A DNA stretch of 64,000 nucleotides, taken from the IMG/VR virus record IMGVR_UViG_3300005289_000016, positions 62,001 through 126,000 of that record; one strand, given 5' to 3'. Both the position numbers and the translations under genes were made by a program. The notes beneath the pieces are model-generated. The model saw only the letters and a list, made by a program, of their open reading frames with translations. It did not search any database and was not told the DNA's origin. Shown piece after piece: positions 1 to 62,068 of the stretch (the stretch's first letter is position 1; every line of letters begins with the position of its first letter).

Positions 1-20
1 TTCACTAAGACCTGCACTGG

Positions 21-46
21 GGGAGAGCTTCGGCTCTCCCTCTTTT
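21..46 (+). terminator. Rho-independent terminator
   Basis: GGGAGAGC-TTCG-GCTCTCCC stem with a cUUCGg loop, followed by TCTTTT. Confidence 0.8.
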
Positions 47-60
47 ACGGAGAGACTCCC

Positions 61-657
61 ATGCAGCTTACCGACGATGATTTCAAACGGCTCGATGAAA
101 TGGATAAAGAAGCCAATGCTCGCATGTCCGAGCGTGACTTCACCCAGCGTCTCCTGCCGCACCTTGTGCCGAATGGTCGGGGTGAAAACGTCCGTGTTGA
201 CATTTATGTAGCCGCTGCTGGTCATGCCAACCGCATGATCGACGTCTTCGAGAATGGCAACCCAGGCAAGATCCTGTTCACCGTTCCACCGCTGATCTCC
301 CCGACTCCGATGACCATCCGCTCAATCCATGCGCGGCCTGAAACGGACATCGGTGAACTCAGCGCAGAGTACGACGCCCAAGTGACCACCAACGCCCCAG
401 GCATGGTGATTGACGGTTTCGTGCAGCGCCTCATGGCTTTGAACTACACTCCGGCTGACGCGATCTCCGCTGTCTACGGGTTGATGTGGGCCAAGATCTA
501 CCGTCGTTACAACATCCCACTGGAATTGATGTTCGGTGAAGCCGCTCCTGAAGTCGCCAAGCAATTGGGTCAGATCAGCGGTGAAGCGGATGTCGATACC
601 GGCCAGGCCAGGAAGACCCTCGATGACATTGCTGAAGACGACATCGAACCGCTCTGA
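61..657 (+). CDS. Conserved hypothetical protein of the phiKZ-like core block, 198 aa, acidic C-terminus EDDIEPL
   Basis: GGAG RBS upstream; codon usage matches the rest of the phage; overlaps the next gene. Confidence 0.75.
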   Translation: MQLTDDDFKRLDEMDKEANARMSERDFTQRLLPHLVPNGRGENVRVDIYVAAAGHANRMIDVFENGNPGKILFTVPPLISPTPMTIRSIHARPETDIGELSAEYDAQVTTNAPGMVIDGFVQRLMALNYTPADAISAVYGLMWAKIYRRYNIPLELMFGEAAPEVAKQLGQISGEADVDTGQARKTLDDIAEDDIEPL

Positions 658-25756: not shown

Positions 25757-26218
25757 ATGTCATTAACGATCGTGGAACAAGACCTGTTTGACGTCCCTGC
25801 CGACACCCGTGTGATCACGATCAATCTGGTCGGGGCAATGGGAGCCGGTGTGGCTCGAACTGCCCGTAACACGGTCCCAGGGCTTCACAAGCACTATCGC
25901 AAGATGTACCCAACGATTGAGCCAGGGAACATCATCACGTATAAACACGAAGACATGCGTTACCTGCTGGTGCCTACCAAACTGGACTGGAGAGATTCTT
26001 CTCCACGGAGTCTGGTGATTCATCACATCAACAAGTTAGCCGTCTTGGCCAGCCGGCACAGACTCGGACGCATTGTCTTACCACCATTAGGTTGCGGTCA
26101 TGGCGGGTTGAGTTGGGAAGACGATATTCAGTACGTCTACCGGGCTCTCTATCCGTTCATTGAAGCAGACATCACAGTCGCTCTAGGCGACAGCAGGAGA
26201 AAGAATGGAAGGTCCTAA
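25757..26218 (+). CDS. Macrodomain protein, DarG/Poa1p-like ADP-ribosylhydrolase
   Basis: INLVGAMGAGVA, LVPTKLDWR and LPPLGCGHGGLSW match the DarG-type macro motifs. Confidence 0.8.
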   Translation: MSLTIVEQDLFDVPADTRVITINLVGAMGAGVARTARNTVPGLHKHYRKMYPTIEPGNIITYKHEDMRYLLVPTKLDWRDSSPRSLVIHHINKLAVLASRHRLGRIVLPPLGCGHGGLSWEDDIQYVYRALYPFIEADITVALGDSRRKNGRS

Positions 26219-29364: not shown

Positions 29365-29367
29365 TAC

Positions 29368-29550
29368 GCGCTCGAAAGAGCCAAACAGTAAGGTTGGTTA
29401 AATTCCGACACGCTGACCGTGGGCAGTTGCGAAGGGAGTGCGGTTCGATCCCGCATGATAAGTCTCAGAGGCAATAACCTCTGAGTAACTCTGGTGAGAC
29501 AAATGGTCAGGCCGACCCGGCCTTTAAACGCACTGGCGTAATCCAGTCGA
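29368..29550 (+). ncRNA. Candidate multibranch ncRNA containing T-arm modules
   Basis: GCTC-GAAA-GAGC; GTTGG-TTAAATT-CCGAC; TGCGG-TTCGATC-CCGCA; CTCAGAGG/CCTCTGAG; long-range CTGACCGT/ATGGTCAG. Confidence 0.55.
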
Positions 29551-29563
29551 GGGGTGGAGATAT

Positions 29564-29674
29564 AGTCCTGTAGCTCAGTTGGTTAGAGCGCTGCCTTTTC
29601 AGGCCGGACCCTTCGGGGTCGTCGGCCTAACAGACACGGCGGAGGTCGGTAGTTCGAATCTACCTAGGACGACC
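29564..29674 (+). tRNA. Atypical tRNA (Glu-UUC-like) with a 35-nt insertion in the anticodon loop; functional status unknown
   Basis: Intact D arm TAGCTCAGTTGGTTAGAGC, anticodon stem CTGCC/GGCGG, AGGTC, T arm GGTAG-TTCGAAT-CTACC. The 42-nt loop holds a cUUCGg hairpin; 6-bp acceptor pairing; no CCA. Confidence 0.75.
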
Positions 29675-29680
29675 CTTTCA

Positions 29681-29735
29681 ATCAGCGGCATTCATGCGCG
29701 GCGCGCATGGTGTACTCGGACGAGGTCCCGCTGGT
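29681..29735 (+). ncRNA. Candidate small structured RNA
   Basis: ATCAGCGG/CCGCTGGT stem enclosing CATGCGC/GCGCATG and GGAC/GTCC hairpins. Confidence 0.4.
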
Positions 29736-29750
29736 TGGATTCAGTTAGAC

Positions 29751-29902
29751 GATGATATAGCTCAGTGGTAGAGCGGTGAGGGTAAAGACGAGACTCGGGT
29801 TCGATTCCCGGAGGACTGTGCTAGAACACAGGCCTTAGCTCAGTGGTAGAGCGCGGTCGTGCACCTTGCAGGCGTCGGTTTGATTCCGGCTATCGTCGCA
29901 CC
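29751..29902 (+). ncRNA. Twin, strand-swapped tRNA-like RNA with two D arms and two T arms
   Basis: Two identical TAGCTCAGTGGTAGAGCG D arms, two T arms, outer 7-bp GATGATA/TATCGTC acceptor, inner loop-capped AGGACTG/CAGGCCT acceptor. Confidence 0.7.
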
Positions 29903-29904
29903 TA

Positions 29905-30050
29905 CACGTCTCATGGGTGTGCACGCCCAGTGAGCTGACTCTACTCGAGGTCCGTCTGAGTAGATGTCAGAGTGTTACCTGATGGACTGCTGTACGATCT
30001 GGCTCATGCCAGCCGCAGCATGTGACTCGACCGAACAGTGGTCGACAAAG
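29905..30050 (+). ncRNA. Candidate multi-hairpin RNA at the end of the island
   Basis: CTCA-TGGGTG/CGCCCA-G-TGAG; CTGAC-TCTACTC/GAGTAGA-T-GTCAG; CTGGC/GCCAG; TCGACC/GGTCGA. Confidence 0.45.
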
Positions 30051-30141
30051 CCTCTAGCTTGCTCGCTTGTCTTTTAAGGCAGGCGGGCAGTTATGCCGTT
30101 TCACTATCGCTTGGGGAAGCGATCCAACTAGGGAGCGTTAC

Positions 30142-61627: not shown

Positions 61628-62068
61628 ATGGTTCAGCAAGATCAGTACCCTGTGCTCGTCGCCGAGGCCATCGAGCAACTGAAAACAGAAGATAAATTTG
61701 GAATGAGTCTCCTGAACATCAGTAACCCGAAGGGTGGCTACTTGGAGATTGCAATCACCAAGGAACGTCATCGAATGGAAGGCTGGCATGCCGTGTTTCA
61801 TGGCGGACCAGATCCTCGCTACTGTGACAGTACCCTTGAAGAGGTAGCTGCATCGTTTGATTCTGTCCGGTTCGACACGAAGAACCTGATGGCAGTCGAG
61901 CAGTTCACCACGCTCATGGGTAACAACTTCCACGTCAAGAAGTTTGTGGACGTAGAACATCAGTTCATCGGAATGAGCGATGATCGTCTCGTGCTCTTCC
62001 ACATCAGCAATGATTGGGGTCACGTACGTGACACTGTCGGTCAACACGTAAGCTTAGCCATTAACTAA
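61628..62068 (+). CDS. Hypothetical protein
   Basis: GGAGG RBS. Confidence 0.65.
   Translation: MVQQDQYPVLVAEAIEQLKTEDKFGMSLLNISNPKGGYLEIAITKERHRMEGWHAVFHGGPDPRYCDSTLEEVAASFDSVRFDTKNLMAVEQFTTLMGNNFHVKKFVDVEHQFIGMSDDRLVLFHISNDWGHVRDTVGQHVSLAIN

Follow-up and report, generated by a model that had tools for sequence, protein, structure and literature searches.

tRNA mimicry is recurrent and is known from transfer-messenger RNA (tmRNA), Y RNAs, viral 3′ tRNA-like structures and mascRNA; to our knowledge, each tRNA mimic described so far displays a single tRNA-like body. Permuted or split tRNA genes occur in the red alga Cyanidioschyzon merolae, in some green algae and in Thermofilum, and Nanoarchaeum has split tRNAs; these genes of archaea and eukaryotes give decoding tRNAs by cleavage at a bulge-helix-bulge (BHB) motif and ligation. 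Tandem (dimeric) tRNA precursors occur in phage arrays, for example in T4. Here we analyzed a stretch of 64,000 nucleotides (hereafter the window), positions 62,001 to 126,000 of the IMG/VR virus record IMGVR_UViG_3300005289_000016, and within it an element of 148 bases (29751-29898, plus strand) in which two interlocked tRNA bodies are predicted. This twin tRNA element would hold two complete tRNA cores made by strand exchange between its units, in effect an RNA domain swap, and is probably a new kind of tRNA mimic.

Two further systems served for comparison. YrlA is a Y RNA of bacteria and mycobacteriophages (Rfam RF02553; Chen et al., 2014, PMC4201824), and that of M. smegmatis is cut by RNase P and receives CCA (PMC4201824). 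The tRNA "introns" of the Lak megaphages contain tRNA-like sequence (Devoto et al., 2019, PMC6784885, Table S6).

Fold and family of the twin tRNA element

The transcript is predicted to fold into a dumbbell of two tRNA cores. Each core would be a four-way junction that includes one D arm, one T arm and a variable loop of 4 nt. Body A would be closed by an open 7-bp acceptor formed from the first and last seven bases, and body B by a loop-capped acceptor hairpin of 8-9 bp, while the two anticodon stems would join at their ends as a single rod, ~10-15 layers long and interrupted by a small internal loop, so that no anticodon loop is left. On sequence evidence, we consider both the conserved family and this dumbbell of two tRNA cores very probably real.

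An initial annotation, made from the letters of the window, had claimed that the outer acceptor strands pair over all seven positions and the inner ones over six of seven. We observed the same counts: the outer strands pair 7/7 (one G-U) and the inner strands 6/7, and two further pairs extend the latter to a 9-layer hairpin with one A-G mismatch. The own acceptor strands of each half form only 2/7 pairs, and random 7-mers would give 7/7 together with at least 6/7 at a frequency of ~1.5e-5. Furthermore, we sampled 77 other tandem tRNA pairs from IMG/VR that share this D arm, and the acceptors of all of them were normal and unswapped.

The two segments that follow the D arms, X1 and X2, had been claimed to pair with each other rather than with themselves. 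X1 has no self-structure (0.0 kcal/mol) and that of X2 is weak (-4.0 kcal/mol); the X1/X2 duplex (-13.5 kcal/mol) does not exceed chance in the window sequence alone, since 13% of shuffles reach its energy, and this claim gains its support from covariation in homologs (see below) and not from the window copy. The rod of the window copy would consist of 6 bp, a 1-nt bulge, 3 bp, a 2 × 1 loop and 3 bp. The unconstrained minimum free energy structure (-51.8 kcal/mol) is not the twin fold (-47.1 kcal/mol) and is unremarkable against shuffles (z = -0.35, or -1.09 with flanks); thermodynamics alone is uninformative here. Enforcing the four D and T arms makes the twin fold the optimum (-50.4 kcal/mol), its rod almost uninterrupted.

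We then scanned large collections by sequence patterns, and the family members reported here are those that these patterns and searches with flanking open reading frames (ORFs) reached. Exact-motif scans of IMG/VR, JGI metagenomes and GTDB genomes, in which the identical D arm was demanded, returned only the source contig or unrelated tRNA-like pairs, and scans for intact "parent" tRNAs A and B found none. A looser pattern, built on universal D-arm and T-loop positions only with a short D-to-T spacing, retrieved two strand-swapped elements, one in L114 (a 238-kb contig) and one in L117 (129 kb). A pattern on the outer 3′ acceptor retrieved L121 (248 kb), and L119 (168 kb) holds an element that scores 50.6 bits with the covariance model R1 described below. 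The flanking ORF of L117 led to five phage contigs of ~170 kb (L123-L127), in which this ORF is just 70-76% identical and a twin lies at the same position, scoring 140-144 bits. When the window, L114 and L117 elements were compared by blastn with 50,697 cultured phage genomes, we obtained generic tRNA arm matches or nothing. The strand-swap pattern of the window is also present in L114, L117 and L119, and homologs appear in at least four unrelated large-phage lineages; we found no cultured relatives for the phages of the other lineages. The outer acceptors of the window and L114 differ in one pair (GATGATA/TATCGTC versus GAGGATA/TATCCTC), a near-identity that argues for homology rather than convergence.

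A covariance model had been suggested as a check by the initial annotation. Model R1 was built from L114, L117 and L121 with the proposed structure, leaving the window out, and it recovered the window copy over its full length at 66.0 bits (E ~1e-14). The best hit in 98 control loci (774 kb, rich in tandem tRNAs) reached 47.9 bits, and the best single tRNA within member loci 48.8 bits. Fourteen long control hits, checked by ARAGORN, proved to be normal tandem tRNAs or pairs in which a tRNA stands behind a tRNA-like gene; none of the five twins tested was called by the same program.

Compensatory changes were then counted in three alignments. A plain MAFFT alignment of three sequences (A6) had 96.8% of its cells paired and nine compensatory pairs, against 3.3 ± 1.4 in shuffles (0/500 reached nine) and 1-3 in slid controls. 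The model-fitted alignment of five lineage representatives (A8) had 96.5% of cells paired (75.2% when shuffled) and 28/42 pairs compensatory (shuffles, 13.3 ± 2.4; slid, 2-8). With ten distinct sequences, again model-fitted (A9), 94.0% of cells were paired (79.5% shuffled) and 29/42 pairs were compensatory, a count reached by 0/500 shuffles (11.1 ± 2.3) and compared with at most eight in slid controls. These pairs comprised 5/7 in the outer acceptor, 9/9 in the capped inner acceptor, 4/5 in rod helix A and 5/5 in rod helix B. The positions of the acceptor and stem-A columns in A8 and A9 are set by the neighboring D and T arms, which are invariant. When seven members were aligned by plain MAFFT, de novo prediction with RNAalifold gave the same eight helices with 12 compensatory pairs.

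The initial annotation had joined the two bodies through their anticodon stems, with one acceptor open and the other loop-capped, and had named missing covariation in the swapped helices as a ground for giving up the fold. The homologs covary in the rod as well as in the open and the capped acceptor, and the de novo prediction agrees, so the outcome of this test, set beforehand, favors the fold.

On the evidence of the window alone, we would have favored a rearranged pseudogene pair, namely Thr(GGU)-like and Ala(UGC)-like tRNA genes that became interleaved at their anticodon loops and are now decaying. After the halves were un-swapped in silico, ARAGORN called tRNA-Ala(tgc) and tRNA-Thr(ggt), whereas the halves as they stand went uncalled; other tRNA-derived debris lies in the region (orphan T arms at 29391-29457), and the window copy has defects (U56, the A-G mismatch and a weak stem B). 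The family largely refutes this relic, and it is now most improbable: the same architecture, with 29/42 pairs compensatory, is present in at least four unrelated lineages. The same recurrence bears out the annotation's view that decay of a tandem duplication does not account for the element. A simple swap of the 5′ acceptor strands by D-arm recombination was also rejected, as it restores an ARAGORN tRNA-Ala for one half only and leaves the rod covariation unexplained.

The annotation's description of the element as lacking an anticodon proved right for the anticodon loop, which is absent; remnants (GGT followed by AA, 29781-85, and TGC followed by AC, 29860-64) survive within the rod, without positions 32-33. 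X1 aligns with phage tRNA-Thr genes.

Family members are 139-150 nt long, and each has two D arms and two T arms. The D arms are near-identical direct repeats within each member, GCCAAGNGGTAAGGC in an AT-rich group and GCTCA(G/A)TGGTAGAGC in the window and L119. As annotated, 4-nt variable loops (AGAC and AGGC) follow the cross-paired segments in the window, and they measure 4 nt in most members. The inner hairpin has 8-9 bp and a loop of 3-6 nt, and is longer and interrupted in L119. The AT-rich rod has ~10 pairs (4 + 2 + 4 bp) with a conserved AGA / CU-N interior, and the window and L119 have a larger, A-rich one; the rod contains 11 unpaired or loop bases in the window and ~6 in AT-rich members. 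The anticodon-like triplets GGT and TGC of the window vary across the family. All members lie within tRNA arrays, on the tRNA strand, and three arrays also hold a phage tmRNA gene (those of the L114 and L117 twins and of L128).

The order and coordinates of the parts given by the initial annotation match the sequence exactly (Table 1). Element positions 8-9 are TA, a single G follows each D arm and TA precedes D arm 2; an 18-nt block that includes D arm 1 recurs exactly at 29836-53. No ORF of at least 60 amino acids overlaps the element.

Table 1. Parts of the twin tRNA element and of its cassette in the window
Feature	Window position	Element position	Strand	Remarks
Whole cassette	29744-29903		+	~160 bp; closest relatives have a single base in its place
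Outer (open) acceptor, 5′ strand GATGATA	29751-29757	1-7	+	Pairs 7/7 with 29891-97
D arm 1 (body A)	29760-29774	10-24	+	Rfam tRNA partial match
X1, rod strand 1	29776-29794	26-44	+	Covaries in family; GTGAG(G), stem A 5′ strand; GGTAA, anticodon remnant; GACG, stem B 3′ strand; AGAC, variable loop
T arm 1 (body B)	29795-29811	45-61	+	Partial Rfam tRNA and YrlA matches
Closed inner acceptor	29812-29835		+	9-layer hairpin AGGACTGTG / CACAGGCCT, CTAGAA loop
Inner acceptor, 3′ strand AGGACTG	29812-29818	62-68	+	
Loop region TG-CTAGAA-CA	29819-29828	69-78	+	
Inner acceptor, 5′ strand CAGGCCT	29829-29835	79-85	+	
D arm 2 (body B)	29838-29852	88-102	+	Identical to D arm 1
X2, rod strand 2	29854-29873	104-123	+	CGGTC, stem B 5′ strand; TGCAC, anticodon remnant; CTTGC, stem A 3′ strand; AGGC, variable loop
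T arm 2 (body A)	29874-29890	124-140	+	T-loop TTTGATT, with U56
Outer acceptor, 3′ strand TATCGTC, and discriminator G	29891-29898		+	Strand at 29891-97 (element 141-147), discriminator at 29898 (element 148); CCA not encoded

Comparison with described RNA classes

ARAGORN found no tRNA at the element, nor on its halves under relaxed thresholds. The Rfam tRNA model (RF00005) gave two partial hits of 24.0 and 22.2 bits, both under the gathering score (29) and confined to the D and T arms. A canonical tRNA was rejected, there being no self-closed acceptor, no 7-nt anticodon loop, no U33 and no score above gathering. The twin is predicted not to decode, since each half has just 5-6 loop bases and lacks U33, and no tRNA is called. 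A dimeric tRNA precursor shares with the twin its two D and two T arms in ~150 nt, its place in a phage tRNA cluster and, probably, processing by RNase P. In the dimer, however, each tRNA pairs with itself and ARAGORN calls two, whereas the helices of the twin are exchanged and ARAGORN calls none. Like the twin, tmRNA is non-decoding and has an acceptor/T-arm end that is matured (and in tmRNA also charged) like that of a tRNA, but tmRNA has neither a D arm nor a second body and carries an mRNA-like reading frame; no tmRNA was called by ARAGORN at the twin.

Body B resembles a permuted tRNA gene: T arm 1 and the 3′ acceptor strand are encoded before the 5′ strand and D arm 2, that is, the 3′ half lies upstream of the 5′ half, with the acceptor strands joined by a short linker. 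Unlike a permuted gene, the twin lacks a BHB motif, offers too few loop bases and is carried by a bacteriophage; identity with a permuted or split tRNA gene was rejected on the first two points. A related explanation is that the rod is cut and re-ligated crosswise to give a linear tRNA A and a circular, subsequently opened, tRNA B, in the manner of the permuted tRNAs of red algae, and that both decode. Besides the permuted order of body B, the survival of the anticodon-like GGT and TGC in the window copy speaks for such nested tRNAs, as does the existence of phage tRNAs with unexplained anticodon-loop insertions (29564-29672; Lak phages). Yet two 7-nt loops need 14 bases and the rod provides 11 (window) or ~6 (AT-rich members), U33 is missing, there is no BHB geometry, the "anticodon" triplets are not conserved in the family, and we found no splicing endonuclease or ligase among the window ORFs scanned. 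We regard nested tRNAs as exceedingly improbable.

YrlA provided a closer structural parallel for one of the two bodies. The Rfam model matched 29792-29852 in part (model positions 28-81, 23.1 bits, E = 0.005; gathering score 69), and the module order of YrlA (T arm, capped acceptor, D arm) is present in body B, where an equivalent of the anticodon stem likewise leads out to the rest of the RNA; both RNAs are non-decoding tRNA mimics. This raised the alternative that the element is a YrlA-type Y RNA, with body B as its permuted, loop-capped tRNA-like module, working with a Ro60/Rsr protein. YrlA, however, has one module on a Ro60/Rsr-binding stem and a gene beside rsr, whereas in the twin a second complete tRNA core with an open acceptor replaces that stem. 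The score lies far under 69 bits, the Rsr-binding motif GNCGAAN0-1G is absent near the 5′ end (the nearest string being GACGAG at 29787-92), and no TROVE (Ro60/Rsr) domain was found among the 40 window ORFs scanned, namely those scanned at 23.6-34.3 kb, with every ORF within 4 kb of the element, and 30 further ORFs of the window. The authors who described YrlA also warn of false YrlA hits from tandem tRNAs (PMC4201824). YrlA identity was rejected on the score, the motif and the missing TROVE gene, and a YrlA-type RNA is very improbable.

The Lak "introns" share more of the setting, in that a second, strain-variable and unexplained tRNA-like unit stands in the place of an anticodon loop in tRNA genes of large phages. 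In Lak, a small hairpin at position 37/38 precedes the inner unit, which runs in normal order and is closed by its own acceptor, and the outer tRNA retains its full anticodon loop and scores as a tRNA. The twin, by contrast, has a permuted inner unit, its two units are joined anticodon stem to anticodon stem and neither keeps its loop. A Lak-type tRNA intron was rejected on these differences (Table S6, PMC6784885).

No family in Rfam 15 matched the twin, and full-text literature searches returned no description of a twin or fused tRNA-like RNA. The initial annotation had placed the fold in no described family, in agreement with these searches, and the twin tRNA family apparently was not described before.

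Proposed role and insertion polymorphism

RNase P and 3′-end enzymes are predicted, by analogy with tRNA biology, to cut the twin from the array transcript at the open acceptor. The twin would also acquire a CCA end, for which its encoded-CCA status, following the habit of each genome, gives indirect support: the L119 phage encodes CCA in 13/14 tRNA genes and its twin ends in a discriminator followed by CCA, the tRNA genes of the L114, L117, L121 and L124 phages mostly lack encoded CCA and so do their twins, and the 3′ end matches the habit in 4/5 lineages. Elbows would form in both bodies, to judge from their tertiary-pair nucleotides (U8, A14, G15/C48, G18 G19, T54 T55 C56 and A58), which are present throughout except for the U56 of T-loop 2.

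Overall, we favor as reasonably probable that the twin is a stable, non-decoding RNA gene family of large-phage tRNA arrays and serves as a bivalent mimic of tRNA. L128, a more distantly related L117-type contig, carries at 1504-1570 a collapsed single body of 67 nt, composed of 5′ strand A, one D arm, X2, T arm 2 and 3′ strand A. Deletion between the two D-arm repeats would yield exactly this form, and the twin therefore appears intrinsically unstable at the DNA level. The D-arm repeats invite such deletion, yet the full form is kept in six related L117-type phages, which suggests selection for two bodies.

What the two bodies might do is more speculative. Two elbows and one acceptor end could be offered to factors that recognize the shape of tRNA and not its anticodon, and the twin could titrate, tether or block such factors during infection. 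We tentatively suggest, while thinking it somewhat doubtful, that the mimic occupies two tRNA-binding sites simultaneously, or holds two tRNA-binding factors together, as a decoy or adapter. If so, it might disarm a host tRNA-directed defense or sensor, or re-program the machinery of translation or tRNA maturation during infection. Should it act in this way on host defense, sensor or maturation factors that recognize tRNA, it would be a new RNA-based layer in phage-host conflict, and would help to explain the many odd tRNA-like genes of jumbo phages.

The window comes from a 276-kb phage that is phiKZ-like in having PhiKZ_gp91, internal head proteins of phiKZ, a tail tube protein and a split RNA polymerase beta-like fragment. 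Among cultured phages, Pseudomonas phage pPa_SNUABM_DT01 comes closest to it (~56% amino acid identity). The element closes a plus-strand tRNA array (Tyr, Asp, Gln, Asn, then a tRNA with a 37-nt anticodon-loop hairpin) and is flanked by two conserved structured segments, one upstream at 29680-29740 and one of ~230 nt downstream. In a near-identical strain from run X1, with flanks >99% identical, position 29737 is joined to 29904 through six other letters. The same empty-site allele (GGTTG-ATTCAC-ACACGTC) is found in that strain and in L106 and L107, relatives at 93% amino acid identity from other samples, whereas an ENA assembly (L105) has the filled allele and is 100% identical over 6384 nt. 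The syntenic relatives L004-L006 and phage pPa_SNUABM_DT01 are without the element, and more distant relatives have a tRNA-His and/or a small ORF in the cassette slot (an ordinary tRNA-His in L004, L005 and L112). In the window phage, the cassette is most simply read as recently acquired from elsewhere, and the twin shows horizontal mobility.

This polymorphism raised the alternative that the twin is a selfish or neutral mobile cassette derived from tRNA, of no benefit to the phage, which spreads between arrays by recombination at conserved D and T sequences or by a homing enzyme acting in trans; its fold would be kept only because it renders the insertion harmless, letting it be excised in the way a tRNA is, or because mobility depends on it. 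Near-identical genomes differ cleanly by the presence or absence of these ~160 bp and the insertion slot is hypervariable, which fits this explanation, and unrelated phages carry a twin while the outer acceptors of the window and L114 are nearly identical. Lak megaphages have tRNA-like insertions that some strains carry and others lack, and that are identical across cohorts (PMC6784885). However, the L117-type twins are syntenic and carry compensatory changes while the flanking protein has diverged to 70-76% identity, which looks like vertical inheritance under purifying selection, and neither an associated endonuclease nor a target-site duplication was seen at the cassette. We consider a purely selfish cassette unlikely.

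The position of the element bears on another explanation, in which the fold is only a cleavage signal for RNase P and RNase Z between the RNAs of the array and the excised RNA has no function. The element does lie between conserved structured RNAs, and an ordinary tRNA-His occupies the same site in L004, L005 and L112. But a single tRNA would suffice as such punctuation, which does not require a covarying capped body and rod, and the closest relatives have nothing at the site. Punctuation alone seems quite improbable.

Several observations count against a conserved, functional mimic. In the lineage of the window, the twin is a derived and dispensable cassette of ~160 bp (29744-29903), because the near-identical strain and the relatives at 93% have an empty site. 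The window phage encodes CCA in 4/4 canonical tRNAs but not in its twin, which also fits recent import, and the window copy has two small defects, the U56 of T-loop 2 and the A-G mismatch of its inner hairpin. No conserved neighbor gene is common to the lineages and no partner protein is known; L129, a relative of the flanking ORF of L119, has no twin, and L119 itself scores barely above the controls (50.6 versus 47.9 bits). Rod helix B, the one adjoining body B, is weak, as 81% of its cells are paired and some members have just 3-4 bp there, and alignments A8 and A9, being fitted to the model, lean to its structure.

The twin shows that some phage "tRNA-array" genes form a class overlooked by standard tRNA finders and by Rfam. 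The twin is a small, easily synthesized RNA for structural work, and natural genomes with and without the cassette offer a ready genetic comparison.

Neighboring features and other tRNA-like genes

The array around the cassette holds further unusual features. The tRNA at 29564-29672 (also L004:7785-7899 and L006:7952-8063; Rfam, 50 bits) bears an anticodon-loop hairpin of 37-43 nt, an insert far too short for a group I intron. It is kept in three lineages with compensatory changes in the inserted hairpin, has a loop of TTTTCA or TTTCAA ahead of the hairpin, and resembles the "enigmatic" tRNA introns of Lak phages; unlike the four adjoining canonical tRNAs, it has no encoded CCA. Directly after it, at 29680-29740 (L004:7906-7966; L006:8070-8130), a conserved branched stem-loop with 24 predicted pairs, three of them compensatory in a three-sequence alignment, forms the left border of the cassette slot. 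On the other side, 29904-30141 is a non-coding segment of ~230 nt upstream of a 127-amino-acid ORF; it ends in a GC-rich hairpin, is kept in all relatives, even pPa_SNUABM_DT01 (L001:3750-3925), and may be a structured RNA or leader.

The slot itself is occupied in L004 (8195-8438) and L006 (8279-8523) by an ORF of ~80 amino acids starting MCNRKGARRRR, with a tRNA-His before the ORF in L004 and L005. Upstream of the hairpin-bearing tRNA, 29365-29563 is a 200-nt insertion that is present in the near-identical strain of run X1 and missing from L004-L006 and a relative in run X2; it contains two orphan T-arm-like hairpins (~29391-29411 and ~29437-29457) and two further stem-loops, with no Rfam match and a fold z-score of -1.9.

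Other contigs reached by the searches hold tRNA-like genes of related interest. L116 (4257-4386) and L120 (430-640) carry odd tandem tRNA-like pairs with partly swapped acceptor or anticodon pairing that score 27-28 bits, and these may be further twin variants. Large-phage tRNA-like genes with truncated or greatly expanded anticodon regions are seen in both of these contigs and at L102:1486-1566, L103:129-285 and L104:3817-3906; that of L103 is a tandem tRNA-like pair with a 4-nt "anticodon" loop in the first unit. In L087-L092 and L096-L101 (e.g., L096:813-907 and L097:5418-5511), a tRNA-like gene with a normal acceptor, an "anticodon" stem of 4-5 bp and a loop of 3-6 nt is followed immediately by a second tRNA or tRNA-like gene; these come from bacterial metagenome-assembled genomes of Hyphomicrobiaceae, Xanthobacteraceae, Flavobacteriaceae and Tolypothrix and from soil metagenome contigs.

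Finally, a 153-amino-acid ORF at 25757-26218, 3 kb upstream of the tRNA array, has a weak Macro-domain match (E = 3e-4, just under the Pfam cut-off) and a PHROG "phosphatase" match.

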